This document shows positions 19,896 to 59,470 of a DNA stretch of 64,000 nucleotides, in pieces. The stretch lies in sequence record PP496438.1; one strand, 5' to 3'. The notes under the pieces were generated by a model that was not told the DNA's origin, searched no databases, and worked only from the letters and a program-made list of their open reading frames with translations. Numbering within the stretch: position 1 is the stretch's first letter; each line of letters starts with the position of its first letter. A program made the translations under genes and the position numbers.

Positions 19896-21374
19896 ATGAA
19901 ATCTGTAGCCGTTGACTACCAAAAGATAGCCAAGGAATGCCAGTGTACCGAGCTGCCTTCTAAGGTAAGAGTTACGCGTGCACGGGTCTATCCAAACTTG
20001 AGGACGTGCCTACTCTTCCTCAAGTACGATGCCAAAGGCGATCTGGTGCAAGCCGAGATCACTGCGCCGTACGACACTTCCACCGAGCCAAAGGTGCGTG
20101 TGCTCAAGCACCCGGACAAGAAGTCCGACTTCCTTTCATTATATAGAGCGCTGATCCGCCATCAGATCATACCCGAGTCTATTCCGAAGAAAGGTAACGG
20201 GATTGCACCGACGCTGGAGGTAATCGGCACACTGGTGAGCCTGCTGCCGGAACGGGATGTCGAAACCTTCCGAACCCTGACCCCGGCCATCCAGACTGGC
20301 AGCGTCATGTACGTCCCTCTGGTTACGTCCCGGCCAATGCCCATGGTGCAACACTGGATACCCGTTGACCAGCATTCAGAGCTGGGCATGATCGAGCTGG
20401 TCGATACGGATAGCAAGCCTTTCCTTAATCAGTGGGTCAACAGGTTGAGCAACACCGCCACCGGTTATGTGATCTACACCCCGGAAGGCTCACACGGTCA
20501 GGAACTCGCCTGCTTCCGTGTGCCCAATGTGCAAGGAGAGGAACTGTGCGTGGTCAAGAAGGTGGACTTCACCCTTACCGTTGCTCGCACCCTCAAGCCG
20601 GTACTGACCGTCTCCACCAAGAGTACGCGTGCCGTATCCCGCATTCCCCTACCCCACTATCTGATGCTGCGCAATCACCACATCAAGGTGGGCACGGTTA
20701 TTTCCCTGCGGCGTAACGACCGAGGTGGGTTGGTGTACCATGAGACGGTGGCAGAGGAAGGGATGACACCTCTGCCACTGTGCCCACATTGCCATAGTGG
20801 ATCTGTGCTGCGAAGTAGTAGCAATGACGTGTACTGCAATAACGATTCATGCCGAGGCCTAGCCATCGTGCGACTTCGCTACATCTTGAACAACAAGCTG
20901 GACGTCAAGTACCTGAGTCAGAACAAGGTGACGGCGTTGGTCAACGACAAGCAGGACCTGTTCAGCTTGCTCAAGACACCGACTCACCTATTGCGGCACA
21001 GAGCGGGCTTCGGTGCACGTACGGTGGATGCGCTGGAAGAGAAGCTGAACACTATCGCCGGTCTTCCACTGCACACGCTGGCCGAGATGTCCTGCGCTTT
21101 CTACAACGTGGGTGTGCCCCCGCTGGATGAGATGGTGTTCAAGAAGATCTTTTCCGTGATGTCGCTTGACCACCTGAAAGCACTGCCCTCCACCGGTAAG
21201 ATGTACAGCCAGTTGCTCGACATCGAAGGTATCCGCAACAACCGCGCAGTGGCTTTCCTCGCTGGTTGGCCTGCATTTCAACAGTGGATGATAGATCTTA
21301 ACGCTGCCCTACAGTCTCGTAGCGCAATCTCCTCCACGGTAAATAACCCGAAACAAATTCGAGGTGTTAAATGA
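19896..21374 (+). CDS. Degenerate NAD+-dependent DNA ligase homologue (OB, C4 Zn finger and HhH retained; KxDG lost)
   Basis: Start moved to 19896 (RBS GGAG). By-eye colinearity with LigA: LEVIGTL, ACFRVP, VKKVDFTLTVARTLKPVL, IKVGTVISLRR, CPHC..YCNNDSC, GFGARTV, DIEGI. The KLDG position reads NLRT. Confidence 0.7.
   Translation: MKSVAVDYQKIAKECQCTELPSKVRVTRARVYPNLRTCLLFLKYDAKGDLVQAEITAPYDTSTEPKVRVLKHPDKKSDFLSLYRALIRHQIIPESIPKKGNGIAPTLEVIGTLVSLLPERDVETFRTLTPAIQTGSVMYVPLVTSRPMPMVQHWIPVDQHSELGMIELVDTDSKPFLNQWVNRLSNTATGYVIYTPEGSHGQELACFRVPNVQGEELCVVKKVDFTLTVARTLKPVLTVSTKSTRAVSRIPLPHYLMLRNHHIKVGTVISLRRNDRGGLVYHETVAEEGMTPLPLCPHCHSGSVLRSSSNDVYCNNDSCRGLAIVRLRYILNNKLDVKYLSQNKVTALVNDKQDLFSLLKTPTHLLRHRAGFGARTVDALEEKLNTIAGLPLHTLAEMSCAFYNVGVPPLDEMVFKKIFSVMSLDHLKALPSTGKMYSQLLDIEGIRNNRAVAFLAGWPAFQQWMIDLNAALQSRSAISSTVNNPKQIRGVK
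21339..21344 (+). promoter_or_regulatory. GTAAAT element before first QueC-like gene
   Basis: 32 nt upstream of the 21371 start. Confidence 0.45.
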
Positions 21375-22135
21375 ACAATCAAAACAGAACTCGTATCGCT
21401 GTGCTTGTCGGCGGCGGTCTGGACTCACATGCGTACATGGTGTTGAAAGCCGACCAGCCTCAGACAGACTTCATTCATGTGGACTACGGCCAGCGGGTTG
21501 CAGTAGCCGAGAGAAACGCCGTGTTGCAAATGGCTGAGAAGCTGGGCATTGCCCGCAGCCGGGTGTACACGCTGATCTGCAACAAGAAGAATCACATGCG
21601 CAAGGTCAATGACGGTGTGGGTGTGTTGTTTGGCACCGGCCCGGTCGAGATGGACAATGCGTTTGTTAAGGGGCGTAACCTGTTCCTGATTCAGAAGGCC
21701 ATCGAGCTGGGCTACGGTCACGTGCACCTGACGCTGACCCAAGAGCGTGGCCGGATGTTCCCCGATGCCGATCTGGCATTCGTCCAGCTGGTGGACAACC
21801 TGATGCACCGCAGTTATGACGTGAGGGTGTCCGCACCCTACATCATGGAAGACAAACACCGGGTGATGTTCAAGGCGTATCGGCACTGTCCCGAGTTCAT
21901 CGATATGTCTTTCACGTGCTGGGTAGGTCCTTATGTGGAATGCGGAACGTGCCCGCACTGCTACAAGAAGGAAAAGATTCGAGCCGAGATGATCGTTGAG
22001 AAGATTGAATACGATCTCAGCAAGGATGAACGTGAGGCGCAGTGGGAGCAAGTCAAGGCAGGCTACGGCGACGCGTTGAAGCCCGCTGAGACCATCAACA
22101 TGAACATTCAGGTTGTTGACGGGGAAATGAAATGA
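21371..22135 (+). CDS. queC: QueC-like PP-loop ATP pyrophosphatase 1 (divergent)
   Basis: VLVGGGLDS (SGGxDS variant), VDYGQR, KGRNLF, FPDAD, FTCW..ECGTCPHC (Zn site). Confidence 0.8.
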   Translation: MNNQNRTRIAVLVGGGLDSHAYMVLKADQPQTDFIHVDYGQRVAVAERNAVLQMAEKLGIARSRVYTLICNKKNHMRKVNDGVGVLFGTGPVEMDNAFVKGRNLFLIQKAIELGYGHVHLTLTQERGRMFPDADLAFVQLVDNLMHRSYDVRVSAPYIMEDKHRVMFKAYRHCPEFIDMSFTCWVGPYVECGTCPHCYKKEKIRAEMIVEKIEYDLSKDEREAQWEQVKAGYGDALKPAETINMNIQVVDGEMK

Positions 22136-22893
22136 ACAAGTTCTTAGGTTGGTTCAAGCGTCTGCTGGGTAAGGAGCAAAAGGCGGTAACGATGACAATG
22201 ACCGACGCCAGTGGCAAGTTGGTCACCATTCATATACCTAAAGGTGCTGGGGTTGAGTACACCTTGTCGAAGTCGGGTGCCCACTTGAACGTCTCGGTCA
22301 AGGACGACATCTTCGTATTGAGCACGAACGGTGCTGGAGGCGGTGGGGGTGGCCGCGGTAGATCCAAACCTGGTGGCCCCGTCCATCCGCCCGTGCATCC
22401 GCGCCAAACCGTCCCAGTGGGTCCAGGCGCCCCGAACATGGGTTGCGCTGGGGACGCACCGAGTGGAGCAGGTGTAACGTCGCCAGTGGGCGCTCAAGCT
22501 TCGTTCCCTATCGGTGCCCGAGCCACTGTTTCTGGTGGTGGCCGCGTTGGTGGTCTGGCGGGTGACGGACGGGAACACAGAGAACTCGGAGGTGCACCCG
22601 GTCCCGGCGGAGATAGCTTCGTGCCCTCTCCAATCCGTAGTAGTGACCGAGCCTATCGCATCCGCGGTCTGTACTACGTCATTACGACTCGAAAGCTTAC
22701 AGGTGAGGAGTACCCGACCCACGAACTTCTGCACTGGGGCCTTCGAGACATAGAACTCATGGGCAAGTTCTCAACGGTCCGTGAAGCTATCGACGAACTC
22801 AAGAGTAAGCTGGGTATCGTGTTAGACGATATTACGGACTATCAGGTTGACTCCATTCCCAAACGAATGTGCAAACCACCGCACAAATCTTGA
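22132..22893 (+). CDS. Hypothetical protein with Gly/Pro-rich disordered middle
   Basis: ATGA overlap with queC-like 1; amphipathic N-terminus, ~100 aa Gly/Pro/Ala-rich linker, globular C-terminus. Confidence 0.6.
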   Translation: MNKFLGWFKRLLGKEQKAVTMTMTDASGKLVTIHIPKGAGVEYTLSKSGAHLNVSVKDDIFVLSTNGAGGGGGGRGRSKPGGPVHPPVHPRQTVPVGPGAPNMGCAGDAPSGAGVTSPVGAQASFPIGARATVSGGGRVGGLAGDGREHRELGGAPGPGGDSFVPSPIRSSDRAYRIRGLYYVITTRKLTGEEYPTHELLHWGLRDIELMGKFSTVREAIDELKSKLGIVLDDITDYQVDSIPKRMCKPPHKS

Positions 22894-22897
22894 GCGG

Positions 22898-22903
22898 GTA
22901 AAT
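22898..22903 (+). promoter_or_regulatory. GTAAAT element
   Basis: Intergenic, 34 nt upstream of 22932. Confidence 0.55.
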
Positions 22904-22931
22904 GGCTCGCAACTAATCCGGAGACACTAGC

Positions 22932-23750
22932 ATGACCACTACACCCCCTAAGATTATCGTCGCATTCAGCGCTGGCACAGATTCAACCACAGCGGCCTAT
23001 TACTATCGCAAGCTCGGGTATCAGGTTACGCTGGCTGTCTTCGATGATGGCCCCTGCAACGATCCAAAGGATCCTCTGTACGATCCTAACAAGCCGGAAG
23101 ATCTTACCAATTTCTCCGACGAGTTCTACGATTACGTACGAATCCATCAAGAACACACTGAGGGTCACCTGCAGTTCGACTTTGTGGAGATCCGTTACCC
23201 ACAGCTCCCGTTGTTGGAAGCCAACAAGACGGCTAAACCTGGTCGGGACAACGCGGCGGCAGCCGAAGCTGACGGCTTGGGGTTCTGGGTAGGCTTCAAA
23301 GGCCTGATGGCGATGATGCTGATGAGCCACGGCGCGGCCAACGGTTACGAGGCTGTAGTCTTCGGCCACATGCCGTACAACAACCATTACGAAGATGAGC
23401 TGCCGCAGAACTTCGAGCTGCTGCGCCAGTACATGGTTACGGCCTATGGTAGCCGGGTGACTATTCCTCAGGTCTATCACCCGTTCTACCGACCCAACTT
23501 TGATACCAAAGAAAAGGTTATCCAGCTGGCGTTGAACATCGGTGTGCCACTGGGAGATACTTATTCGTGCCGCCGAGGTGAAGCGGAAACCCGAGGCGTC
23601 CTCCTGCCACTTCTGCGCGGCGGTAAATCCAACTACGTGATGCCCACCTACCGCTGGAAGCATTGCGGAACGTGTGAGAACTGTGTAGAACGCAAGCGAG
23701 CTTTCGCCGCGCTGGGCATGAAAGACCCAGCCCCTTATATGGAACATTGA
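22932..23750 (+). CDS. queC: QueC-like PP-loop ATP pyrophosphatase 2 (divergent)
   Basis: IVAFSAGTDSTT, YEDELPQNF (cf. YPDCRPEF), TKEKVIQLALNIGVPLGDTYSC ... HCGTCENCVERKRAF. Confidence 0.8.
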   Translation: MTTTPPKIIVAFSAGTDSTTAAYYYRKLGYQVTLAVFDDGPCNDPKDPLYDPNKPEDLTNFSDEFYDYVRIHQEHTEGHLQFDFVEIRYPQLPLLEANKTAKPGRDNAAAAEADGLGFWVGFKGLMAMMLMSHGAANGYEAVVFGHMPYNNHYEDELPQNFELLRQYMVTAYGSRVTIPQVYHPFYRPNFDTKEKVIQLALNIGVPLGDTYSCRRGEAETRGVLLPLLRGGKSNYVMPTYRWKHCGTCENCVERKRAFAALGMKDPAPYMEH

Positions 23751-23751
23751 T

Positions 23752-24741: not shown

Positions 24742-24744
24742 GAC

Positions 24745-25746
24745 ATGTACACTCCGTATTCCCAAAACAGCCTTATGCAGTCGATCCCTCTGGATGACCA
24801 AGGTACATTCGCCCATCCACCGTACACGATGGAAGGAGAGTTCACCGACGTGTGGACGAATCCCAGCCTGTACGGGTTTGTTAGCTTGTTGAACGGTCAG
24901 AGCAATAGCCGGGCATATCGAGACTGGATGACCACCCACAATCTTCCAGCCCTGTTCCTCGGTCCGCACCATGAAGACAACTTCTGGTTTGAATTCAGCA
25001 CTGGTCTCGATTCCAACTGCACGCTGGATTACAACGAGATCAACGTCCAAGGCAACCTGCAGGACTTCCTTGGGAGATTGACGTCATCTCGCCGTCGCTC
25101 CGTGCTCAAGGCAAAGGAAACGGATACAATGATCCACAAGGCAGGCTCGGTAGCCAACTTCAACCTGTATCATCCGGTAGAGGGTAGGCTGTATAGTCTG
25201 ACCGTGATTCACGAACGCCGGGTGATGAAAGATATTTCCGAGTTTATCGAATCGAAACTCTGGAGTATGAAGCATACGCCTACTGACCTCACGTACGGTG
25301 CATTCACCACTCTGATGGACTACATCCGGTTGAAGCAGCGAGATGACACGCCGCTGGGCCACCGGTTGCGCAACGTACAGCTCTTGGTTATCCGAGATGA
25401 ACGCTCCGGGTTTATCGTGTCGGTACACCTGGTGGCGATCACCACGTTGAAAGATGAGTCCATGAACCCCATCAAGACGTACATGCACTCCTTCGCACGC
25501 ATCACTGTTCTCCCTGCACGCATCGCCTTACTTGCGTTGATCAAGGCGGTTCAAGAGTTAAACGTCACCAGTCAGTATGCGTCCCGTGCACTGGCGAAGA
25601 TCGACTATCTTGATGTGAGCAACGTGGTGCTGTCCGAGCGAGAGCAGTACAAGTCGGACTTCTTCACCGGCAAATGCCAAGTGCGTGCGTGGGCATCCCC
25701 GGCGCTGCTGGAACGGCAGTTACCTTTCGTCACGCCGATCCCGTAA
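24745..25746 (+). CDS. Fem/BioF2-type GNAT-fold protein 2
   Basis: LQDFLGRLTSSRRRSVLKA helix and terminal YLDVSN...EQYKSDF. Confidence 0.5.
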   Translation: MYTPYSQNSLMQSIPLDDQGTFAHPPYTMEGEFTDVWTNPSLYGFVSLLNGQSNSRAYRDWMTTHNLPALFLGPHHEDNFWFEFSTGLDSNCTLDYNEINVQGNLQDFLGRLTSSRRRSVLKAKETDTMIHKAGSVANFNLYHPVEGRLYSLTVIHERRVMKDISEFIESKLWSMKHTPTDLTYGAFTTLMDYIRLKQRDDTPLGHRLRNVQLLVIRDERSGFIVSVHLVAITTLKDESMNPIKTYMHSFARITVLPARIALLALIKAVQELNVTSQYASRALAKIDYLDVSNVVLSEREQYKSDFFTGKCQVRAWASPALLERQLPFVTPIP

Positions 25747-25750
25747 CTCT

Positions 25751-25756
25751 GTAAAT
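25751..25756 (+). promoter_or_regulatory. GTAAAT element
   Basis: Intergenic, 50 nt upstream of 25801. Confidence 0.55.
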
Positions 25757-25800
25757 GATGGGAACAGCCCCACCATCACTTCATCTCTAGGGTAGTTCCC

Positions 25801-26853
25801 ATGCAAGACTTCGATAAGATAATGATCGATAGTAGTTTGACATCCAATCTGGTGTACGCAGGGTTGGGTAACTTGATCACGCCCCGCGCACTTGACCTGC
25901 TGATCGAACATCAGGCTGCACTGGAAAACGTATACGCCAATCTGGAAACGGCCTATCAGATTACCCCACCCTTCCCCTGTGAAGCTGCATTCAATTCCCC
26001 TGACAAAGATCCTGTGCTGGTCGCCGACTATCTGAATGCTACTCCCGCCATCCGTTGCGGAGAGCTGTCTGGATTCGAGGCAAAGCCCGGCAGTTACTAC
26101 CATGCGCCCGCCGCTGGTATCTCCCCGGAACATCGCATTGACGTACGTGGTATGTCTTTGCGTGAGTTCGACCACTATCTGGTTGAGCGTAAGGAAGTAT
26201 CCCGTATCACTACCAATCTGGTGGCCGACAAGTTCCGCTGTGAGACGCATGTGTACAAAGTGGATGAAGATCATATCCTGATCCATGACGCCGAACGAGT
26301 TGGGATCAGCCAGACGGACTTCCGCCGCATGTGGGCGCAGACCCGCCGCCGGGAAATCGCTGAAAACTATCTGCAGTACATGCCCATCGAAGATTCCGCC
26401 AAGGATGATCAGGTGGTGCGACTGATCAACGAAGACGTAGCACGGGTGTTCGCCCAGAACGTCGACTACGACCGCATGATTCCGCCCGAGCTGATCTTCG
26501 ATGGTCAGGGCAAGCCGGTGCTGACCGTGCTGAAAGATTGCAACGCCAAGGTATTGGGCATTGGTGTGTACGTCATCTACAAGTCAGCTGACCCAGAGCA
26601 TGACAGCGAACTGCACTGGCGTGGCGCTTTCTACGATCACGAAGATCCTCGCGTAGCATCCATGGGCATTGAACACGCTCTGGTTGCCAGCGCACTGCAC
26701 ACAGCGTACGCCTGCAACGCGGTCCTCTATCTGACCAAGGCACCTAAGTCCGTGTGCGACGCATGGAAGACGGAAGTGCACCAAGGTTACGGTCTGGTCC
26801 GTAATGCGATGCCGGAACTGTCTGACACCCCTTACATTCTGGCTATCCAGTAA
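25801..26853 (+). CDS. GNAT-fold protein 3 (weakest member of the set)
   Basis: FDHYL helix, VLGIGVYV strand, HWRGAFYD...GIEHALV, terminal LYLT...AWKT; similar size and layout to neighbours. Confidence 0.4.
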   Translation: MQDFDKIMIDSSLTSNLVYAGLGNLITPRALDLLIEHQAALENVYANLETAYQITPPFPCEAAFNSPDKDPVLVADYLNATPAIRCGELSGFEAKPGSYYHAPAAGISPEHRIDVRGMSLREFDHYLVERKEVSRITTNLVADKFRCETHVYKVDEDHILIHDAERVGISQTDFRRMWAQTRRREIAENYLQYMPIEDSAKDDQVVRLINEDVARVFAQNVDYDRMIPPELIFDGQGKPVLTVLKDCNAKVLGIGVYVIYKSADPEHDSELHWRGAFYDHEDPRVASMGIEHALVASALHTAYACNAVLYLTKAPKSVCDAWKTEVHQGYGLVRNAMPELSDTPYILAIQ

Positions 26854-26862
26854 ATAGCCGGT
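26850..26862 (+). promoter_or_regulatory. GTAAATAGCCGGT element
   Basis: 37 nt upstream of 26887; identical 13-mer before queE at 55765. Confidence 0.55.
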
Positions 26863-26886
26863 AACTCCATCCATTGAGGTACTTCC

Positions 26887-28971
26887 ATGAAATCCGTGAA
26901 CCCCATCTTCAAACACGTTCCCCAGTTCGACTGGCCTGTCATTCCCCGTGCGCAGTGGGAAGAGATCATCAAGGGAAAAGAGCATGTGATGTTCGACTCC
27001 TTCTCGCAGCTCGCTCAGGTGCTGGCTATCCCGGTGAGCAGTTACCAGTTCTACTTCGAAGATGGGTCCACGTTGTTCGCCGGTCCCGAAGCAACCTTCA
27101 CCGCCGCCCCCTATCCGTTGTATCAGGATCTGGAATTCGTCCTGACCCCGGATGAGACGTTGGTGCCGGGTCTTGCACTGGATACCAAACCGTGGGGCCT
27201 GTACACCGACGAATGGGTGGACAACTACGAAGGTGCGGACAAGGAAGACATCGGCAACAAGACCGGGTTCGAATTCATTCCGCTGTCGGACGCTTTGAAA
27301 CTGGTGGTCCTCAACACGGAGACCATGCAGCTCCAGTACACTGCAATCGAGAGCTTCACGTACGACGGCGTGACTTACGTATACCTGCTGGCCGATGGCG
27401 TGTGCTGGGTACTGGCGGGCAAGTCCGGTGGTCTGGTTGCCAGCGAGCATGACAAAGGCGCGGCGTTCATCATGGTGTCCCATCCCGAGTTCGCCGGGTG
27501 CAGCGTAGACAACATGTACCCAAGTGAGTTCGGTGAAGCGGAAGCGACGTTCTACGTTCAAGACGAGGAACACAATTACCTGGACGCGGCTAACCGCATC
27601 TTCGAGGAAGCCAAGGACGTAGGCGCTGGCACGTTCCTGACCATTGAGACCGGTGATGGATTGCCGACCGCGCTGGCGTACAACCTGCGGTACAGTGATG
27701 TGGCCCACGTTAATCTGCCGATGCACAACATCCACCAGTTCACTTCTCTTCACGTACGACTGGGTGAGACGCCTAACTTCTCCGAGGCCCCGGAAGCGTG
27801 CCGCATGAAAGAGGTGATGGAGTATCTGGCGGACCCTGAGTCCCCGGTAGATCATTACTGGTCGGCCATCATGGTACTGGAGAAGAACTTCCCCGGTTTC
27901 GCCGACGCCCTGAAAGACTCCAGTGTCCCGACCCGTGACATCGTGCACTCCAAACAGGCGTTCAGCTTGGAGATCGATCGCCAGTTCGGCAAGGAAGTGG
28001 CAAGCAAGATCGGGCTGAACACTGGCGTATTCGCTCAAGTGAAAGACCGTGATGAATGGCTGGTACGCAAACACGAGTTCCCTACCGATAAGGTGGCCGT
28101 CAAGTACAACACCAAACACTTCATCGGCATCTTCGACAAGGACGAGGTATCGAAGTCCATCAACATGTGGCTGGCTGGTCAACCCGGAGAGTCGCTGATG
28201 ATCGAAGAGTACTTCGGTGAGGGCAATCAGGAATTCAACCTGTGCTACGTGATCAACGAAGATTTCGTGCAGCCGACGCTGTTCCTGTGCGAAGTCAACA
28301 AGATCCTCAGCAATGACACCGGCGGCAAAGGTGGCAACACGCTGGCCTGCCATGATGCTCGTATTAACAAGTACCCTGAGTTCTTCGAGCCGGTCAATAA
28401 TGCGCTTGCTAACCTGCATGAGCACGTGGAAGGTGTGAAGGGCTGGGTTGACCTGAGCTTCATGGTTCGCGACGGTATCCCATACTTCACAGAGTGGTGC
28501 ATTCGCATCGGCTGCTCCAACAACGCCACCATCGTGCGCCAGATGGAGACCCCGCTCGACGTCCTGTTGACTAACGTGGTCAACAAGGTGCATACCGAGC
28601 TGTCTTGGAAACACTCCATGTCTGTCAGCGTGGACATCTACAGCATGCCGCTATCCGCAGGCAACGACGCCAACATGCAGTTCACCGACTCGCTGACCAC
28701 TCCGGTAGAGATGGTGTCCCCGCTCAATCTGGAACTGGCGGCGGAGAGTTTCTTCGACCCGATTGATTCGGCCTGGAACGCGGTGTACGACGGCTACATC
28801 GTCGAGGCGTATAATCGCTATGGCACCGTCTCGGGGTACTCCACCAACTGGAACTTCGCCTGCAATGCGGCGTATAATCACTTGAAAGATCAGTCGGTGT
28901 TGTACGGAGCGTACCGCGAAGCGCCTGCCCACCATGACCCACTGACTCTGTTCCCTTTCCTCAAGGCGTAA
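26887..28971 (+). CDS. PurD/GARS-like ATP-grasp ligase with ~245-aa N-terminal extension
   Basis: SLEIDRQFGKEVASKIGL (cf. LEGSKAFTKDFL), MIEEYF, EVNKILSNDTGGKGGNT (cf. DHKR..DGDTGPNTGGMG), FTEWCIRIG (cf. IEFNCRFG). Confidence 0.7.
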   Translation: MKSVNPIFKHVPQFDWPVIPRAQWEEIIKGKEHVMFDSFSQLAQVLAIPVSSYQFYFEDGSTLFAGPEATFTAAPYPLYQDLEFVLTPDETLVPGLALDTKPWGLYTDEWVDNYEGADKEDIGNKTGFEFIPLSDALKLVVLNTETMQLQYTAIESFTYDGVTYVYLLADGVCWVLAGKSGGLVASEHDKGAAFIMVSHPEFAGCSVDNMYPSEFGEAEATFYVQDEEHNYLDAANRIFEEAKDVGAGTFLTIETGDGLPTALAYNLRYSDVAHVNLPMHNIHQFTSLHVRLGETPNFSEAPEACRMKEVMEYLADPESPVDHYWSAIMVLEKNFPGFADALKDSSVPTRDIVHSKQAFSLEIDRQFGKEVASKIGLNTGVFAQVKDRDEWLVRKHEFPTDKVAVKYNTKHFIGIFDKDEVSKSINMWLAGQPGESLMIEEYFGEGNQEFNLCYVINEDFVQPTLFLCEVNKILSNDTGGKGGNTLACHDARINKYPEFFEPVNNALANLHEHVEGVKGWVDLSFMVRDGIPYFTEWCIRIGCSNNATIVRQMETPLDVLLTNVVNKVHTELSWKHSMSVSVDIYSMPLSAGNDANMQFTDSLTTPVEMVSPLNLELAAESFFDPIDSAWNAVYDGYIVEAYNRYGTVSGYSTNWNFACNAAYNHLKDQSVLYGAYREAPAHHDPLTLFPFLKA

Positions 28972-28974
28972 TCC

Positions 28975-30135
28975 ATGAGCACTCCATTCCAAGAGTTCAC
29001 CCTAGAGGGGTGGATTCAACATATGAATCAGGATCAAATCTGGAAGCGGTACGCCAACGATCATCCTAACAGGGTTGAGTTCAGCCCTGTTTGGCGTGAC
29101 GAGATGTATCGGTTGATGGTACAGTTCAAAGAGCTGCTGCCGATGTCGTTCTCCAATCCGGTGTACGGCTTCACCGAAGGCTATCTGGAAGGGTTCGGAC
29201 TCCAGCCTTTCTACGGCGATGATCCTTTCAATCCGATGGTTCAGCCTCTTAGCCATCCTCTGGTTCACGTGGGCTTCCCACTCACACTGGACGAGATCGT
29301 AGCGAGCGTGCGGGACTGGCAGTCCCTGAGCGATCACCTGGGGCGTCCGCAACTGGTCGATACATTCGAGCCGGTTTCACTGCTAGCGCGCAACCTGTAC
29401 GAGCCTAACGCGCTGCTGGCCGTACGGAACAAGGAAGAGATCGTGATGAACGGGGGCACGCCCGCGAACTACTTCCTCTGGCTGAATAGCCCGGTCACCG
29501 AACTCAAAGACGACTTCGACGTTTATCTGGCCAGCCTGACCAAGAAGCGCCGCTACAAAGTGAAGCAGGCGTTGGCGACGGTAGGCACCGAAGAGAATCC
29601 CCGGATCAGCGTCAGCACCGGGTCTCGTTTCGGCGAAGGGCTGTTGTCCGATCAGGTGGACAGCATCCTTGCTACGTTCGAAGATCCAGTGGACATCGAG
29701 TGCATGCTTCTTCAGTTGCTATTCGGGGTTGCAACCTGCAATACCCATCCGCATCTTGTCGATCTGGTGTGTGCAGACCAGCAGTTGGGGATCTTCATCA
29801 AGCGTAACGGCCACACGATGAACTTCCTCTACAACCGCGACCCGGACAACCGCGCTGATTCAGGCATAAACCTGCTTACCCAGTACGTGCGCCATCTGCA
29901 CATGAACCGACCGGAAGGTGTTATGTACGTGGACCCGACATGCCGATATCGGCCTGACGAGGACAGTATGAACACCTACAAGCGGGTGATCACCAACGAG
30001 AACCGGTATCACCCAATGCCGTTCGTCTCGGCTGACCCTGCGCACATCGAAGGTGTGCTTACCCCGGCGTTCATTGCAGGCCATTGGCAGATGTCGGCGT
30101 CCAACGGACCGGCCAACCCCGAGATGATGGAGTAA
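28975..30135 (+). CDS. Fem/BioF2-type GNAT-fold protein 4
   Basis: FDVYLASLTKKRRYKVKQAL (characteristic helix) and terminal YVDP...NTYKRVI. Confidence 0.55.
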   Translation: MSTPFQEFTLEGWIQHMNQDQIWKRYANDHPNRVEFSPVWRDEMYRLMVQFKELLPMSFSNPVYGFTEGYLEGFGLQPFYGDDPFNPMVQPLSHPLVHVGFPLTLDEIVASVRDWQSLSDHLGRPQLVDTFEPVSLLARNLYEPNALLAVRNKEEIVMNGGTPANYFLWLNSPVTELKDDFDVYLASLTKKRRYKVKQALATVGTEENPRISVSTGSRFGEGLLSDQVDSILATFEDPVDIECMLLQLLFGVATCNTHPHLVDLVCADQQLGIFIKRNGHTMNFLYNRDPDNRADSGINLLTQYVRHLHMNRPEGVMYVDPTCRYRPDEDSMNTYKRVITNENRYHPMPFVSADPAHIEGVLTPAFIAGHWQMSASNGPANPEMME

Positions 30136-30137
30136 CC

Positions 30138-31085
30138 ATGGCAAAGTCCAAAATGAGACGGTTGGCGATCAACCACATCTATGACTTCTACCCGTTGTAT
30201 CAGGTGATGTACGGGCGTGGCATGGAGACCAAAGCGTTCGAGGTATCCAAGTTCGCCAAGATGGTTATGGACTTCGAAGCCTCGACCAGTACTCGCCGGA
30301 AGTGGGACGTGCTGGAGCCCTTCAGCGGTATCAGTGAACACGAACACTTCTTCGCTGCGACCGGCCTGAACATCGAGCACTACACCGGCATGGACATTGT
30401 GGTTCCAGATGGGGCCACGAACGTCATTCAAGGGGACATCATCACCGACACCCTTCCGTTTCACGTCAACGCAGTGTTCGCCTTCTACTACAGCTTGCAG
30501 AATGTACGGGACGCGGCGACCGGCATGCACACGCGGGCCAAGCTGGTGGAGTTCTTCGACAACATCATTGGTCATCTGCAAGTAAATGCGAACAAGAGCC
30601 GTATGCCCGCAGTGTTCGCGTTCCACCTTGACCAGCCTGAAGATCCTAATTACTATCTGACGTCCCGTGCCGACGTTGGAGGTGAACAGTCATGGACTGC
30701 ACCCGCGTGTGGTCTGCTCGGGCAGTGGGTCAAGTGCAAGCCGACTGACACTCTGGAAGTCAAGTGCAATCTGGATACCTGGTACAACCGCGTGCAGTGC
30801 ACAGCGTATGATCAGGCAGAGGACATTCAGATTCTGGTAAATGGGAAAGTAACCGCTGTCGTAGACATCGAGCAGCCGTTCACCCATCGGGTCTGGACCG
30901 AGCATGAGGTCATCGATATCCTGCGGGGTCTGGACTACAATCTGCACTTCCACATGTACAACGGCACCCTCTCCAATTACGACTTCTTGATGACCCGGCT
31001 GGACGACAAGCCCGTTCCCGGCGATGAAGAGTCTAATACTAATCAGATGACAACTGATATGTTGGTTGTCGTTAATCCGAGGTAA
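30138..31085 (+). CDS. Class I SAM-dependent methyltransferase 1
   Basis: Start moved to 30138 (RBS GGAG). VLEPFSG (motif I variant), YTGMDI, VIQGDI, VNAVFAFYYSL. Confidence 0.7.
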   Translation: MAKSKMRRLAINHIYDFYPLYQVMYGRGMETKAFEVSKFAKMVMDFEASTSTRRKWDVLEPFSGISEHEHFFAATGLNIEHYTGMDIVVPDGATNVIQGDIITDTLPFHVNAVFAFYYSLQNVRDAATGMHTRAKLVEFFDNIIGHLQVNANKSRMPAVFAFHLDQPEDPNYYLTSRADVGGEQSWTAPACGLLGQWVKCKPTDTLEVKCNLDTWYNRVQCTAYDQAEDIQILVNGKVTAVVDIEQPFTHRVWTEHEVIDILRGLDYNLHFHMYNGTLSNYDFLMTRLDDKPVPGDEESNTNQMTTDMLVVVNPR

Positions 31086-31087
31086 GC

Positions 31088-32005
31088 ATGGCTAAGCCCA
31101 AGGTTCCAACCAAGACGATCCCCACGTTGTACCAAGACTGGGGATTGTACAGCGCCATCTGCGAACTGCCGCAGGAGACGATGCTGATGATGTCGCGCTT
31201 CGTGGCAGACCGAACCATTGAGCACGCTGAGCGTATCGATCAGGTAATGGTCGAGATCATGGAACCCTTCAGCGGCCCAATCCCGTATTACGAGCCAGAC
31301 ATCCGCAGCTTCCTGACCCGCGCTAAGCTTGATCTGTACACGTACGATCACGTCGAATACCTGGATCACGGCAAACTGTCGGAAGACAACGGCATCATCA
31401 TCGGTGACATTACCACCATCGATCTGAAGCAGAAGTACGACGTCATCTACGGCAGTTACGGCAGCTTGGCCTGCCTGCTGCTGGATCAGACGCACAACAA
31501 AGCGTACGAAAAGTCGCACGCGGCGCTGGTCAACATCCGCAACCACCTGAAACCCAACGGCATCTTCATCCTGAACGCCAACGGGTCCAGTGAGAGCCTA
31601 CTGAACAACCTGCTGAACTCCGATGAGCCGGATCAGGAGATTCGCGTTCGTCCGGGATCGCAGCTTGGCAAGAAGTTCGGCATCAAGCCGGACAGCAACG
31701 CGCTGCTTCGCTTCACCTATCACGTGGAGTACGACCGACGCACCACCTGCACCATGTGCCACTACAGCGATATGGTGCTGTCTGTAAATGGGGTTGACAT
31801 CCAGCGCTGGGAGGTGGAATCCCCGACGTATCTTGCTCCGCTGGACGAACCCGAACTAATTCGAATGGCAGGTATGGCTGGTTTCAATCTGGACAACACT
31901 GAGTTCTACGGATTGGACACCACCGGTTATCCTGCCTTCTTCAAAATGGATACGGTCTGCGACGGGTCATGGTCACCCGCCGAGTTCGTAGTCTTTCGCA
32001 CCTAA
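31088..32005 (+). CDS. Class I SAM-dependent methyltransferase 2 (small-molecule N-methyltransferase-like)
   Basis: IMEPFSG, IIGDITTIDLKQKYDVIYGSYGSL, ALVNIRNHLKPNGIFIL, beta-sheet lid insert, ELIRMAGMAGF. Confidence 0.8.
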   Translation: MAKPKVPTKTIPTLYQDWGLYSAICELPQETMLMMSRFVADRTIEHAERIDQVMVEIMEPFSGPIPYYEPDIRSFLTRAKLDLYTYDHVEYLDHGKLSEDNGIIIGDITTIDLKQKYDVIYGSYGSLACLLLDQTHNKAYEKSHAALVNIRNHLKPNGIFILNANGSSESLLNNLLNSDEPDQEIRVRPGSQLGKKFGIKPDSNALLRFTYHVEYDRRTTCTMCHYSDMVLSVNGVDIQRWEVESPTYLAPLDEPELIRMAGMAGFNLDNTEFYGLDTTGYPAFFKMDTVCDGSWSPAEFVVFRT

Positions 32006-32015
32006 CGAGGTTCCT

Positions 32016-33251
32016 ATGAGCGTTATCATCCCCACCGTAGCGATGGAGAGTGGTCAGCCAGACATGATCATTCAAGGCTGTTCCACTGGTCGCGTCTCTA
32101 TGGCCGAGCCTAACGAGAGCGCCAAACCCAAGTCTTCCAAGAAGCTGTACGAACGTGAAGACCTGATGGCGTACGACAGCGAGTCGGAGCACTGGCAGAA
32201 GCAGTTGGCCCGCCGCTACGCTCACCATGGTGAGATGGTCGGTGTGTTGAACAACGTCGAGGTGGTGCCGGAAGCCACCTACCAGAACTTCGACATGAAG
32301 ATCACTCCGTACACCGCGCAGTTGATGGATCAGAACGACCCCAACTGCCCGATTCGTCTGCAGTACATGCCGACCAACAAAGAGCTGGAGTCGATTCAGC
32401 GTGAAGAGACCATGCACAACGAGCTGGGCGAGGAAGAGGACACCGTCCCCGGTACCTCGGTCGTGCACCGCTACCCGCGCCGCGTCTTGTTCCTGACCAC
32501 CACCCAGTGCGCTAGCTTCTGCCGTTACTGCACCCGTGCACGCATCGTCTCTCACGGCGGTGAAGCGGCTATCACCAAGAAGCACCTGGACGCCAGCATC
32601 GACTACATCGCCTCGAACAAGGACATAGAAGACGTGTTGCTGTCCGGCGGTGACCCGTTCATCCTGCCAGACAACAAGCTCGACGAGATCCTCGGTCGTA
32701 TCCGCGCCGAAGCACCTCACGTTCGCTTCCTGCGTATTGGTAGCCGACTGCCGGTACAGATGCCGACTCGTATCACTCCAGAGCTGTGCGAGATTCTGGA
32801 ACGCCACAACGTCAACATGGTCAACATCCATGTGAACCACCCGAAAGAGGTCACCCCACTGCTGGCCTCCCGGATGAAGATGTTGCGCAAAGCTGGCGTG
32901 ATGATCGGTAATCAGGCGGTCCTCCTGAAAGGCGTGAACGACTCCATCGAGGTGATGACCGAGCTGTGCTTGCGCATGGTCGAGATGGGTGTGCGTCCGT
33001 ACTACGTCTACTCCAACGATCCGGTTGCGCAGGCCGCACACTTCACCGTCTCGCTCCGTGATATGCTGGACATCAACGAAGGCATGCGTGGCTTCCTGTC
33101 CGGCCCGGCAATGCCCACCTTCGTGGTGGACGGCGTGGGTGGCTTGGGCAAGATGCCCGTGCAGAAAGAGTATGTGACAGTACTGGGGAGTGGTAAGATC
33201 TGGGCCACCAACTTCGAAGGAATGACCACTCGCATGCCCCATCTGGAGTAA
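32016..33251 (+). CDS. kamA: Lysine 2,3-aminomutase family radical SAM/PLP enzyme
   Basis: CPIRLQYMP, HRYPRRVLF, CASFCRYC (CxxxCxxC), LLSGGDP, RIGSRLPV, HVNHPKE, NQAVLLKGVND, RPYY, GGLGKMPV (PLP Lys). Confidence 0.92.
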   Translation: MSVIIPTVAMESGQPDMIIQGCSTGRVSMAEPNESAKPKSSKKLYEREDLMAYDSESEHWQKQLARRYAHHGEMVGVLNNVEVVPEATYQNFDMKITPYTAQLMDQNDPNCPIRLQYMPTNKELESIQREETMHNELGEEEDTVPGTSVVHRYPRRVLFLTTTQCASFCRYCTRARIVSHGGEAAITKKHLDASIDYIASNKDIEDVLLSGGDPFILPDNKLDEILGRIRAEAPHVRFLRIGSRLPVQMPTRITPELCEILERHNVNMVNIHVNHPKEVTPLLASRMKMLRKAGVMIGNQAVLLKGVNDSIEVMTELCLRMVEMGVRPYYVYSNDPVAQAAHFTVSLRDMLDINEGMRGFLSGPAMPTFVVDGVGGLGKMPVQKEYVTVLGSGKIWATNFEGMTTRMPHLE

Positions 33252-33401: not shown

Positions 33402-33833
33402 ATGAGCTTCTCCGTAACCGTAGCTGCACAGACCATCGCTGCCCCCGAGTCGCTGGGTAGCCCGAAAGGCATCAGCGTCCTCGAAGCCAACGAAGGCTTT
33501 GCTGTCATCGAATTCCAACGTCCTCGCGCCTCGAAGCGTGACCAGATCGCCGTCCCTCGCGTCCAGATCCTTTCCCTGAGCCACGGCAGCGCCGACGGCG
33601 ACAGCGGTTACCTGATCGCTCAAGGCATGGCCGGTGTGGCCGACGAATTCGAAGCCGCAAGCTTCACCATCGAAGGCAACGTTGCCACTTTCGTGACCGC
33701 TGAAGGCGCCACCATCGAAACCGACGCACGTCTGACCCGTATCCTCGCTTACGGCGTGGAAGAGGGAGAAAACAGCCTGCTGGGTAAGCCGGAAAAGAAA
33801 GTAAAACCGAAAGCAAGCACCAAGAAGAAGTAA
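33402..33833 (+). CDS. Hypothetical, probably highly expressed protein with Lys-rich tail
   Basis: RBS GAGG, strong C-ending codon bias, own promoter motif and terminator. Confidence 0.7.
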   Translation: MSFSVTVAAQTIAAPESLGSPKGISVLEANEGFAVIEFQRPRASKRDQIAVPRVQILSLSHGSADGDSGYLIAQGMAGVADEFEAASFTIEGNVATFVTAEGATIETDARLTRILAYGVEEGENSLLGKPEKKVKPKASTKKK

Positions 33834-33913: not shown

Positions 33914-34234
33914 ATGGCTAAAGACAGATTCCTGATCTACTCCAAAAACTGCTTAGGGTGTAAACACCTCGTTGATGGAGCCAAGAAGACCTACACTGCG
34001 TGTCACTACAGTGAAGGCAACGAACGCTGCCCCGCGCAGTACGTCCAGATTATTACGGGTGTGGATATCCATGCCTTGGCTACTGAGTTGGCAGACGCCA
34101 TCAGGGCTAACAATTCCAAGAAGTACGATCGGGTGAATGCCAAGATCGGTAAATTGGACACTGTGATTGCCAGTAGTGTGAAGCTGGCCGCAGATAACCT
34201 AATAGTAGGGGCCGGTGATGGCGAAGGTAAATAG
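33914..34234 (+). CDS. Hypothetical Cys/His-containing protein
   Basis: CLGCKH...CHY..C; RBS GAGG. Confidence 0.6.
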   Translation: MAKDRFLIYSKNCLGCKHLVDGAKKTYTACHYSEGNERCPAQYVQIITGVDIHALATELADAIRANNSKKYDRVNAKIGKLDTVIASSVKLAADNLIVGAGDGEGK

Positions 34235-38024: not shown

Positions 38025-38717
38025 ATGGCGAGCACGCTGGGCATTAAAGAAGCACAAGACATACTGGGGCTGGAACCGGGCGCTGACCTTGCCGATGTCA
38101 AAAAGGCCGTACGCAAGCTGTGCCAGAAGTTCCACCCGGACAAGGAAGGCGGTGACCCTGAGATGTTCCGGCGTGTGCGGGAAGCCGGGGAAATGCTGGA
38201 GGAAATTCTGGCGGATCACGACATCATCCCGAACGAGGAATATCTGGACGCGCTCAACTACGTCATCACCATGCTCGGCCAGAAGTACGTGGAGGCTGAG
38301 ATGAACGGGATGAACGCCCGACGCCGGGTCGCGATCAAGATGACCAACGACGTTTTCAGCTTCCACAATCTGCAGCAAGCGGCATTCGCAGCGGCAGCAC
38401 CGCCTAGCGCAGAGTCCTACGTGCTGAACGAACTTGAACAGGAGATCAACGTCAACATCGATGAGTTCAAGTCATCTATCGACCGTCACTCCGTTCAAGG
38501 TAAAGGGCTGCGCATGTTGATGCAGAACATGAAGGCGCCGAAGATGGCCTACTCCGTGTGGCAAGACGCTCGGGATTCCTTGGCGCAGGCTATTCGCCAG
38601 CAACGCAACAACATCCGCATGGCTAAGATACGGATGCAAGCACTGGAAGAGTTCGAAGCCATCCAGCACAAGCGCAAGCAGGAAGCCATTCGTCTGGCCC
38701 ATGGGGTGCGCTCATGA
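38025..38717 (+). CDS. J-domain protein
   Basis: ILGLEPGA..VKKAVRKLCQKFHPDKEGG (HPD motif), helical C-terminus. Confidence 0.85.
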   Translation: MASTLGIKEAQDILGLEPGADLADVKKAVRKLCQKFHPDKEGGDPEMFRRVREAGEMLEEILADHDIIPNEEYLDALNYVITMLGQKYVEAEMNGMNARRRVAIKMTNDVFSFHNLQQAAFAAAAPPSAESYVLNELEQEINVNIDEFKSSIDRHSVQGKGLRMLMQNMKAPKMAYSVWQDARDSLAQAIRQQRNNIRMAKIRMQALEEFEAIQHKRKQEAIRLAHGVRS

Positions 38718-55810: not shown

Positions 55811-56782
55811 ATGAAAGATATGCGCTATACCGAACTGTTCTATTCCCTCCAAGGTGAGGGGTTGCGCGTTGGAGTGCCGTCGGTATTCTTCCGCATGTTC
55901 GGTTGCAACTTCGAGTGCAAGGGGTTCTCCAATCCTGAAATGAAAGATCCCAACGTGATCCCAGCACTTAATCTGCTGTCGATCAACGAAGCTGACCTGG
56001 AGCTGGGTTGTGACTCTCGTTACAGCTGGCACAAGGACTATCGCAACCTGGCCGTCAAAGCCCCGCCTCACGAGGTAGCCAACACCCTGCTCGACTTCAC
56101 GAAAGAGAAGCACTTGGCGGCGGTGGCTCGCTGGCCCAAGCGCAACCATGCAGGCAATGTCATCCGCTTGATCGCCGGTCAGCCCACAGGTGAAATACTC
56201 CAGATTGCTACGCTGGCGCACGTGCCTGACTGGGTCTTCACCGGTGGTGAACCGTTCATGCAGCAAGAGCAACTTGAAGCCCTGCTGCGGCACACCATGT
56301 ACGTGGTGGAGGAAGAACAGGTTGACTTCGGCGGCGTCGGGCTTCCTATGTTGACCTTCGAAACTAACGCCAGCATCAAGATGCGTGACTCTATGGTTAG
56401 CTGCCTGAGTGAGTACAATGACAGCTTCGGTGACCTGCACTTCTCCAACAGCCCCAAGCTGTCGTTCACCGGAGAGCATCGCAGTGCGGCGCTCAAGCCC
56501 GAAGTTATCGGCCAGCAAGAGCAAACGGGTGGATCCAGTTCTTTCAAGTTCGTGGTACGCCCCGCACGTGAAGACTTCGATGAGCTGATGGAGTTCATGC
56601 AAGAGTACATGTCGTACACCGGATCGGGCAATCTGGAAGGCATTTACGTCATGCCGGTCGGTGCCAGCCTACATCAACAGCAGGCCATCGCCACACAGGT
56701 TGCCGAGCTGGCACTGGAATACGGCCTGTCCTACAGCCCCCGACTCCAGTGTGACCTGTGGGCCAACAAGATAGGGACGTGA
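55811..56782 (+). CDS. queE: 7-carboxy-7-deazaguanine synthase (radical SAM)
   Basis: ELFYSLQGEG..GVPSVFFRMFGCNFEC...CDS..SW, FTGGEP, FETN, SNSPKL, KFVV, YVMPVG, SPRLQ. Confidence 0.88.
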   Translation: MKDMRYTELFYSLQGEGLRVGVPSVFFRMFGCNFECKGFSNPEMKDPNVIPALNLLSINEADLELGCDSRYSWHKDYRNLAVKAPPHEVANTLLDFTKEKHLAAVARWPKRNHAGNVIRLIAGQPTGEILQIATLAHVPDWVFTGGEPFMQQEQLEALLRHTMYVVEEEQVDFGGVGLPMLTFETNASIKMRDSMVSCLSEYNDSFGDLHFSNSPKLSFTGEHRSAALKPEVIGQQEQTGGSSSFKFVVRPAREDFDELMEFMQEYMSYTGSGNLEGIYVMPVGASLHQQQAIATQVAELALEYGLSYSPRLQCDLWANKIGT

Positions 56783-58747: not shown

Positions 58748-59470
58748 ATGGCTATTGATGCAGAGAAGTACCCACTGCTGGCGGCAGTGCAGAAAGATAT
58801 AACCGAGAGTGGCAAGCGTTGTTTTGCCAATGATAACATCTCGGAGTTCCTTCATTTTCAAGGTGAAAGGAATGATGCCACCTTCGCAGAGATGAAAGCG
58901 GCAGTTGAAGAAAAGTACGGTGAACTGCTGGAACTTCTTCTGATCAACTGGGGTGCTGACCATAACTCCGAAGATACCCCGCGGCGTGTTGCCAAGATGC
59001 TGGTCGAGGAGACCTACATGGGTCGGTACGAGCCTACGCCGACGATTACGTCGTTCCCCAACGACAGCGGGCGTACTCAGATGAACGTGATCGGTCCGCT
59101 GCGTGTTGAGAGCCAGTGCAGTCACCACCACCAGAACATCCGGGGTTGGGCATGGGTCGGTGTGATGCCCTCCGAAGAAGGAAAGCTGATTGGTCTGAGC
59201 AAGTTCAGCCGACTGCTGGATCACATCTGCCGTCGTCCTCAAATCCAAGAGGAAATGGTTGCTCAGGTTACGCATGCGCTAAACGAACTGGTAGAGGGTA
59301 ACCTTGGTGTTGCTGTGGTGATCAATGCAGAACACCAGTGCATGGCCGTTCGTGGTGTGAAAGAGCCGTGTGCTCAGACCGTCACGTCGGAGATGATCGG
59401 TGCGTTCCTCGAACCTGGTGTTCGTCAGGAGTTCCTGACCTACGTGCAAATGAACCCAGCTCCATGCTAA
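58748..59470 (+). CDS. folE: GTP cyclohydrolase I
   Basis: DTPRRVAKM, SQCSHHH, IGLSKFSR, RRPQIQE, AEHQCMAVRGV. Confidence 0.95.
   Translation: MAIDAEKYPLLAAVQKDITESGKRCFANDNISEFLHFQGERNDATFAEMKAAVEEKYGELLELLLINWGADHNSEDTPRRVAKMLVEETYMGRYEPTPTITSFPNDSGRTQMNVIGPLRVESQCSHHHQNIRGWAWVGVMPSEEGKLIGLSKFSRLLDHICRRPQIQEEMVAQVTHALNELVEGNLGVAVVINAEHQCMAVRGVKEPCAQTVTSEMIGAFLEPGVRQEFLTYVQMNPAPC

Follow-up and report, generated by a model that had tools for sequence, protein, structure and literature searches.

A lysine 2,3-aminomutase of Pseudomonas putida jumbo phages may supply beta-lysine for a tailored 7-deazaguanine

We analyzed a window of 64,000 nucleotides that corresponds, at 100% identity, to the last 64 kb of the genome of Pseudomonas phage vB_PpuM-SKa-4 (PP496438.1; 202,022 bp; host P. 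putida), and found that its gene SKa4_00199 is, by sequence, a radical S-adenosylmethionine (SAM)/pyridoxal 5'-phosphate (PLP) aminomutase of the KamA family. On balance, and with modest confidence, we read it as an active L-lysine aminomutase whose beta-lysine would go into a tailored 7-deazaguanine, probably one of phage DNA. In this reading we infer that the enzyme is active, which enzyme accepts beta-lysine, how it is linked and that the base ends up in DNA. An earlier note, made from the letters of the window, had described an intact lysine 2,3-aminomutase in a phage. Both halves of that description hold: the window is phage DNA, and the gene matches the family models and keeps the iron-sulfur cysteines, the PLP lysine and the lysine-binding residues.

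Results

Family assignment and active site

Positions 32016-33251 of the window are exactly one open reading frame, which runs from ATG to stop, encodes 411 amino acids and was deposited as 'hypothetical protein' (record positions are window positions plus 138,022). The protein matches the Pfam models Radical_SAM (45.2, cut-off 29.5), LAM_C (40, cut-off 26.7) and Fer4_12, and scores 274.9 bits with the NCBIfam KamA-family model TIGR00238 (cut-off 199.2). The equivalog models of the family score it at 320.5 bits (TIGR03820, lysine/AblA; cut-off 525.4), 302.6 bits (glutamate 2,3-aminomutase; cut-off 650), 292.6 bits (arginine 2,3-aminomutase; cut-off 600) and 223.5 bits (EpmB; cut-off 369.3). 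Its sole solved relative by sequence is the Clostridium subterminale lysine 2,3-aminomutase 2A5H (E = 4.7e-80 over residues 89-406).

We read residue correspondences from a pairwise alignment with 2A5H and from an alignment of 98 family members. The CxxxCxxC triad (Cys165/169/172; Cys125/129/132 in 2A5H) is invariant in all 98 sequences, as is Lys379, the counterpart of the PLP lysine Lys337. Arg174 aligns with Arg134 of 2A5H, and Asp335 and Asp372 with Asp293 and Asp330; the columns of the triad and of these four residues are invariant or nearly so across the family. In 2A5H we take Arg134 to hold the carboxylate of the substrate, and Asp293 and Asp330 to hold the epsilon-amino group of lysine. 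The column of Asp330 is occupied by Glu in EpmB, and in glutamate 2,3-aminomutase Lys and Asn take the place of the two Asp. Because the lysine pocket is intact, the phage aminomutase most likely uses free lysine, before any ligation.

The zinc site of the clostridial enzyme is not kept. Its ligand Cys268 is replaced by Ser310, the tail that follows the PLP lysine comprises 32 residues without a cysteine, and the C-terminal domain with the C-terminal cysteines (Cys375, Cys377 and Cys380 in 2A5H) is missing. Cysteine occupies the zinc column in just 15 of the 98 family members, and the Bacillaceae KamA also lacks it. Since most of the family does without this cysteine, its absence says little about activity.

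The frame is intact in all nine P. putida jumbo phages of the genus, with protein identities of 92-100%. Pairwise comparisons among four of these nine sister phages give a ratio of nonsynonymous to synonymous substitution rates (dN/dS) of 0.09-0.16, with dS up to 0.43. The gene is thus under purifying selection. Amino-acid changes among the sister phages cluster in residues 10-38 and beyond residue 345, leaving the catalytic core nearly invariant. We consider it highly probable that SKa4_00199 is an active enzyme. The N-terminal extension (residues 1-38, window positions 32016-32130) is not present in bacterial homologues and is the most variable part of the protein among the sisters; KoPa-5 carries a 10-residue deletion within this stretch. 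The true start codon may sit further downstream.

Clade and substrate

In a collection of 5.8 billion proteins, the closest relatives are 'KamA family' proteins of 393-413 amino acids from Lysobacter, Undibacterium, Rhodoferax, Aquabacterium and other Burkholderiales, with identities of 59-67%. We built two quick maximum-likelihood trees rooted on the EpmB sequences of E. coli and Acinetobacter, from which all support values are taken. Both trees unite SKa4_00199 and the short proteobacterial KamAs in one clade (Shimodaira-Hasegawa-like approximate likelihood ratio support 98-99), and the phage sequences sit on long branches. The earlier note had named a phylogeny against the KamA, EpmB, AblA and glutamate/arginine enzymes as a check. 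The trees set the phage clade apart from EpmB, the outgroup, and from the classical KamA/AblA sequences of Bacillota, Chloroflexota, Deinococcus and Verrucomicrobiota; the arginine and glutamate aminomutases were compared through NCBIfam scores and published residue identities. Some of the 'bacterial' neighbors of the phage gene in the tree may be viral: P0007 (60% identical), first taken as bacterial, derives from an 18-kb ENA metagenome contig (L186) that is phage-like and carries the module described below with an AAA protein, a DEAD helicase and DnaB, and P0008 and P0009, on short contigs, are perhaps similar cases.

All four Burkholderiales members of the clade whose surroundings we examined (two Undibacterium genomes, one uncultured betaproteobacterium and one Burkholderiales metagenome-assembled genome; ~60% identical to the phage protein) start an operon of the order kamA, kdd, an unknown gene, kamD, kamE, a thioesterase gene and kce. 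The kamA-kdd-kamDE-kce operon is the textbook route of beta-lysine degradation. The KamAs of these operons score 320-326 bits with the lysine aminomutase model and have the same sub-threshold NCBIfam profile as SKa4_00199, while the classical enzymes of Tissierellales and Priestia pass that model at 635-642 bits. As these kamDE-operon relatives score equally low, the shortfall is a property of a lysine aminomutase clade that the models do not cover, and not counter-evidence on function. The substrate of the phage enzyme is very likely L-lysine, because clade members ~60% identical to it head lysine-degradation operons.

A conserved module around the aminomutase

SKa4_00199 is the twelfth and last gene of an unbroken same-strand run (19896-33251) in the replication block, bordered upstream by a helicase gene on the opposite strand and downstream by topoisomerase II. 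Scans for consensus promoters and terminators gave no excess of sites over shuffled sequence, and the borders of the operon rest on gene spacing. The run includes two genes for QueC-like proteins, one for a PurD-like ATP-grasp ligase and two methyltransferase-like genes (Table 1). In six phage lineages this type of KamA neighbors the PurD-like ATP-grasp, and in five of the six QueC-like genes are also seen. Among 50,697 phage records, the PurD-like ATP-grasp is present in exactly the same 11 as this KamA type.

The module is recognizable well beyond the Pseudomonas phages. In the Vibrio coralliilyticus phages GR11A and GR7B (KamA 51% identical) the order is a ligase-like gene, two QueC-like genes, two unknown genes, ATP-grasp, KamA, two small genes and topoisomerase II. 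The IMG/VR contigs L100, L101 and L102 (KamA 44-52%) carry one or more QueC-like genes and the ATP-grasp within 7 kb; the ENA contig L186 (KamA 60%) has two SKa4_00196-like genes, the ATP-grasp, a methyltransferase-like gene and KamA; and the Logan contig L184 keeps the counterparts of SKa4_00195, 00196, 00197 and 00198 in the same order and ends before the expected position of KamA. In the Vibrio phage records the KamA gene is labeled 'lysine 2,3-aminomutase', so that its occurrence in phages is already on record, though uninterpreted.

We compared this linkage with KamA loci at large. Among the best 80 viral contigs with a KamA relative, module partners lie next to KamA in just L100, L101 and L102; L125 matches the topoisomerase genes only, and the other 76 loci have no module partner beside KamA. 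Nor was any found beside KamA in 83 bacterial loci. The IMG/VR contigs with the module came from an alignment-based scan, as a single-protein pattern scan of IMG/VR gave no match; a scan of IMG/VR with a three-sequence ATP-grasp alignment recovered the L100 contig alone, and a word-based protein search with the ATP-grasp domain returned a single outside relative. From this comparative evidence it is likely that the aminomutase supplies the conserved module. The earlier note had proposed that it supplies a beta-amino acid to the adjacent ligases. That proposal gains from the shared distribution and neighborhood of KamA and the PurD-like ligase, but the two genes directly upstream of KamA are methyltransferase-like and not ligases. 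The ligases of the run are the QueC-like and PurD-like enzymes, which are associated with a 7-deazaguanine/TGT-like system.

A second, unrelated set of phage KamAs occurs in huge uncultured phages of up to 735 kb and in many IMG/VR contigs, in a clade near Desulfobacterales and Pirellulaceae (L016:11983-13131 in LR756500, L017:11887-12927 in LR756501, L103-L110, L126 and L132). The viral KamAs of this set, those of the 462-kb and 735-kb megaphages included, have no QueC-like or ATP-grasp partners, and the megaphage KamAs have no informative neighbors. LR756500 has a further radical SAM gene 1.3 kb downstream of KamA on the opposite strand.

Association with 7-deazaguanine genes

SKa-4 encodes FolE, a QueE-like protein and a DpdA/tRNA-guanine transglycosylase (TGT)-like protein outside the run (Table 1). 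Each of the four searchable genomes with the module (SKa-4, GR11A and the L101 and L102 contigs) has all three genes, and no orthologues of them were found in a megaphage control with a non-module KamA. On L101 the first QueC-like gene is immediately preceded, on its own strand, by the TGT-like gene, just ahead of which comes FolE. A match to QueD/PTPS in SKa-4 is marginal (E = 0.002), and the genome has no canonical QueC, Gat-QueC, ArcS or QueF.

Relatives of the TGT-like protein with 23-35% identity occur in the Xanthomonas phages PhiXhv-12/15/16, Erwinia phage Ep032, phage NCTB, Achromobacter phage Motura and Burkholderia phage BCSR5. Not one of these phages, the Xanthomonas, Erwinia and Achromobacter jumbo phages included, is among the matches to KamA or ATP-grasp, and those of Xanthomonas and Erwinia have Gat-QueC in place of the divergent QueC-like pair. 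The module thus looks like an alternative tailoring branch.

Some observations concern the DNA of these phages more generally. A gene of SKa-4 annotated as thymidylate synthase encodes 384 amino acids. This is longer than usual for ThyA, and a hydroxymethylase-type enzyme would point to modification of pyrimidines. The columns of a standard phage DNA kit are reported to have given very low yields, and other columns to have been more efficient for the G3 jumbo phages, which form this genus (PMC7616413); this is compatible with an unusual DNA chemistry, though anecdotal. Cryptic prophages are reported to shield P. putida from these phages more than 1000-fold (PMC7616413).

Gene neighborhood in SKa-4

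Both QueC-like proteins are divergent. The best solved relative of the first is Cap9 (9nto_B, 1.1e-8, 38 bits), ahead of Bacillus subtilis QueC (3bl5, 3.7e-5). The second has no solved relative at E <= 0.1; its orthologue on L101 is 45% identical. In a profile search of the PDB with SKa4_00195, the six best matches are all PurD chains, down to 2.4e-7. SKa4_00196 has orthologues in GR11A (31%), L184 (38%) and L186, and SKa4_00197 has one in L184 (36%). An AlphaFold model of SKa4_00198 (predicted local distance difference test score, pLDDT, 73) has as its best Foldseek matches CcbJ, CgnL, glycine and glycine-sarcosine N-methyltransferases, TylM1, DesVI, CalS10 and CypM, almost all of them amine N-methyltransferases, which the modeled protein resembles. 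Homologues of this type adjoin KamA in L100, L102 and L186, and the family is also found in L184. Two small proteins without a family match are encoded between KamA and topoisomerase II, the same position as in GR11A.

Table 1. Genes of the SKa-4 module and further genes discussed in the text (window positions unless otherwise given)
Gene or product	Position	Strand	Remarks
SKa4_00188	19896..21374	+	weakly DNA-ligase-like; 25% identical to GR11A gene annotated ligA; one PDB DNA-ligase match (E = 0.013); no Pfam match
SKa4_00189, QueC-like PP-loop protein 1	21371..22135	+	Pfam QueC 5.6e-19; QueC equivalog 62 bits (cut-off 150)
SKa4_00190	22132..22893	+	between the two QueC-like genes; no family match
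SKa4_00191, QueC-like PP-loop protein 2	22932..23750	+	Pfam QueC 5.5e-12; QueC equivalog 23 bits (cut-off 150)
SKa4_00192	23752-24741	+	no Pfam, NCBIfam or PHROG match; family present in L101 (three copies) and L184 (one copy)
SKa4_00193	24745-25746	+	no Pfam, NCBIfam or PHROG match
SKa4_00194	25801-26853	+	no Pfam, NCBIfam or PHROG match
SKa4_00195, PurD-like ATP-grasp ligase	26887..28971	+	694 aa; ATP-grasp is the C-terminal half, N-terminal half unassigned; NCBIfam purD 1.8e-7
SKa4_00196	28975..30135	+	conserved partner; Fem/Acetyltransf_6-like GNAT as a lead only (Atlas lead score 0.94)
SKa4_00197	30138..31085	+	methyltransferase-like paralogue of SKa4_00198 (iterated profile search)
SKa4_00198	31088..32005	+	class I SAM-dependent methyltransferase-like, amine N-methyltransferase type (Atlas lead score 0.96)
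SKa4_00199	32016..33251	+	KamA-family lysine 2,3-aminomutase; catalytic core ~residues 45-385
SKa4_00200	33402..33833	+	first small protein downstream of KamA, conserved; homologues follow the module in GR11A, L100 and L101
Second small protein	33914-34234		
DnaJ (J) domain protein	38025-38717		230 aa; just past topoisomerase II
QueE-like protein	55811..56782	+	N-terminal motif alone matches QueE models
FolE (GTP cyclohydrolase I)	58748..59470	+	9.4e-39; first step to 7-deazaguanines
DpdA/TGT-like protein	record PP496438.1 81638-83008 (L004:21639-23009)	-	456 aa; outside window
Thymidylate synthase-annotated gene	L009:25970-27124 (record PP496438.1)		outside window

Discussion

A putative pathway

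The gene content of the module suggests the following pathway. With its [4Fe-4S] cluster, SAM and PLP, SKa4_00199 would move the alpha-amino group of free L-lysine to C3 and release free beta-lysine, probably the 3S isomer, as a building block for the conserved phage module and not for degradation or for attachment to elongation factor P (EF-P). The phage FolE and QueE-like enzymes, with host enzymes, would provide 7-carboxy-7-deazaguanine (CDG). QueC adenylates the 7-carboxylate of CDG and then adds ammonia. A QueC-like enzyme of the module could adenylate the same carboxylate and form an amide with an amino group of beta-lysine in place of ammonia, beta-lysine offering two amines and one carboxylate. 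The PurD-like ligase, which would activate an amino-acid carboxylate towards an amine, could make a second amide, and N-methyltransferases could then cap the remaining free amine, so that the ATP-grasp and other enzymes would extend or methylate the side chain. Finally, the DpdA/TGT-like enzyme would insert the base into phage DNA. Amide formation of this kind has a precedent in the QueC-like Cap9, which joins CDG to a protein amine (PMC11996544).

Our confidence decreases along this pathway. In our estimate there is an even chance at best that the pathway ends in a 7-deazaguanine of DNA that bears beta-lysine. More tentatively still, some or all guanine in the DNA may be replaced by a 7-deazaguanine-7-carboxamide with a beta-lysine side chain, further N-methylated and possibly extended in the Pseudomonas phages.

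Comparison with known systems

The phage enzyme shares with C. subterminale KamA (2A5H) its family and fold (318 residues aligned) and, in the active site, the PLP lysine, the CxxxCxxC motif and the three residues that hold lysine, one Arg and two Asp; it differs in the Ser at the position of Cys268, in lacking the C-terminal cysteines and domain, and in standing outside any fermentation operon. It is closer to the short KamAs of Burkholderiales (Undibacterium, Aquabacterium-like, Rhodoferax), with which it has in common the clade, ~60% identity, the length class, the missing zinc site and the score profile. Those bacterial genes feed degradation, whereas the phage gene stands with QueC-like, ATP-grasp and methyltransferase-like genes. 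EpmB (YjeK) is likewise a short-form KamA-family enzyme, which makes beta-lysine for attachment to a macromolecule and not for catabolism, but it is only 30-32% identical, is the outgroup of the trees, has Glu at the second side-chain site and works with an EpmA that the phage lacks. In the AblA/AblB system free beta-lysine is also derivatized by a neighboring enzyme, yielding the osmolyte N-epsilon-acetyl-beta-lysine; the phage protein remains below the cut-off of TIGR03820, and no AblB-type acetyltransferase is adjacent to it. Amino-acid-decorated phage thymidines are a further parallel, as are the beta-amino-acid nucleoside antibiotics streptothricin and blasticidin S, the latter with a beta-amino acid supplied by a KamA-family enzyme; in these the decoration is on pyrimidines or free nucleosides.

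The known 7-deazaguanine modifications of phage DNA include dPreQ0, dADG, dG+, dPreQ1 and dCDG, among others (PMC6884629, PMC10516641). Like the phages that make them, SKa-4 is a lytic phage encoding FolE, a QueE-like protein, QueC-family enzymes and a candidate TGT-family transglycosylase; unlike them, it has two divergent QueC-like proteins, KamA and a PurD-like ligase instead of canonical QueC, Gat-QueC, ArcS or QueF. Neither of these two papers mentions an aminomutase, lysine or ATP-grasp. The Cap9/Cap10 pair of type IV CBASS (cyclic oligonucleotide-based antiphage signaling system) resembles the proposed scheme in that a QueC-like enzyme amidates the 7-carboxyl of a deazaguanine with an amine other than ammonia and has a TGT-family partner (PMC11996544). 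It differs in being a host defense that targets the N-terminus of a protein, whereas beta-lysine is the amine in our proposal; at 38 bits, Cap9 is also only weakly similar to QueC-like protein 1. In the literature that we searched, we found no description of a beta-lysine-bearing purine in DNA and no relevant paper combining an aminomutase, 7-deazaguanine and phages. Neither a survey of jumbo phages nor one of the QueC family from 2026 brings up an aminomutase or lysine in a 7-deazaguanine context, and the paper describing the phage collection does not discuss SKa4_00199.

Points against the proposed reading and alternatives to it

Several observations weigh against the reading of SKa4_00199 as a source of beta-lysine for a base in DNA. 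On the side of the enzyme, it remains under every NCBIfam equivalog cut-off and lacks the clostridial zinc cysteines and C-terminal domain. Arginine or ornithine might also fit the acidic pair that holds the side-chain amine. The nearest bacterial relatives, from Lysobacter and from a 41-kb contig (64-69% identity), are orphans with no informative neighbors. On the side of the pathway, the TGT-like protein, which would only putatively act on DNA, has weak matches to TGT models (29.3 bits summed in Pfam, 4.7e-10 in NCBIfam and 0.0015 with archaeosine TGT in the PDB). Related jumbo phages have the TGT-like gene without KamA. The Fem-like assignment of SKa4_00196 could not be confirmed either, its two-sequence model having a pLDDT of 37 and the Pfam FemAB model having no match in the phage.

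An alternative that we regard as unlikely, though not negligible, keeps beta-lysine and the module but changes the product, from a DNA base to a soluble 7-deazapurine-peptide compound, comparable to the beta-amino-acid nucleoside antibiotics, or to a modification of protein or tRNA in the manner of Cap9/Cap10. QueC-like protein 1 is indeed nearer to the protein-modifying Cap9 (PMC11996544) than to QueC, and the weakly matching TGT-like gene lies 82 kb from the module in SKa-4. Small-molecule clusters, moreover, typically contain ATP-grasp ligases, methyltransferases and aminomutases. The genomic setting argues for DNA instead: the module lies within the replication block, between helicase and topoisomerase II; a DNA-ligase-like gene heads it in two lineages; in L101 it directly adjoins the TGT-like gene, with which it co-occurs in all four searchable genomes; and it takes the place of the Gat-QueC of related jumbo phages that share the TGT-like gene.

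It is improbable that the building block is something other than free beta-lysine, the aminomutase acting on arginine, ornithine or glutamate, or on lysine that is already attached. This alternative could draw on equivalog scores that are all below cut-off and similar (lysine 320, glutamate 303, arginine 293), and the acidic pair could conceivably bind a guanidinium group. Yet the protein retains the Arg that binds the carboxylate in the lysine enzyme, along with the two Asp, and relatives of ~60% identity with the same score profile head kamDE operons that consume beta-lysine. To fill the pocket, a substrate must offer a free alpha-amino group, an alpha-carboxylate and a side-chain amine together, which speaks against tethered lysine.

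Lysine catabolism, osmolyte synthesis and modification of EF-P are the established cellular uses of the family, and the nearest bacterial clade includes members of catabolic operons. A stand-alone auxiliary metabolic gene that would direct host lysine to one of these fates, the beta-lysine or N-acetyl-beta-lysine osmolyte and EF-P beta-lysylation among them, is nevertheless very improbable, and we rejected all three uses for want of the partner genes. Around KamA in the phage loci that we examined there is no homologue of kamDE, kdd or kce. The earlier note had reported no EpmA-like gene, and this extends to the whole 202-kb phage, which has no class II aminoacyl-tRNA-synthetase core anywhere. 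EF-P lysylation would also lack a target in this host, since Pseudomonas EF-P is activated by arginine rhamnosylation and not by lysylation. The only annotated acetyltransferase is 18 kb away on the opposite strand, and a stand-alone role would not explain why the gene is so strictly linked to those for the ATP-grasp and QueC-like proteins. Least credible is a recent capture from bacteria that is inactive or dispensable in the phage: the 64-69% identity to bacterial genes and the deposited name 'hypothetical protein' would fit it, but the frame is intact in nine phages at a dN/dS of 0.09-0.16 with a nearly invariant core, and phages that infect other hosts keep the module too, with KamA identities of 44-60%.

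Significance

Hypermodifications of phage DNA defeat restriction enzymes and CRISPR, and are a source of new enzymes and tools. The substituents of the 7-deazaguanine bases so far known from DNA are all small (nitrile, amide, amidine, aminomethyl, carboxyl or hydrogen). Nine P. putida phages and two Vibrio phages with the module are isolated and can be grown on laboratory strains, which makes our prediction directly testable. If the target is not DNA, the module would remain an undescribed phage-encoded pathway that consumes beta-lysine. If the reading proposed here is true, a cationic beta-lysine side chain would bring a new class of chemistry to purines and be the first amino-acid decoration of a purine in DNA, and SKa4_00199 would be the first radical SAM aminomutase recruited to DNA hypermodification. 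This would add a fifth biological role for lysine 2,3-aminomutase and widen the chemistry of QueC-like enzymes to an amino acid in the place of ammonia.

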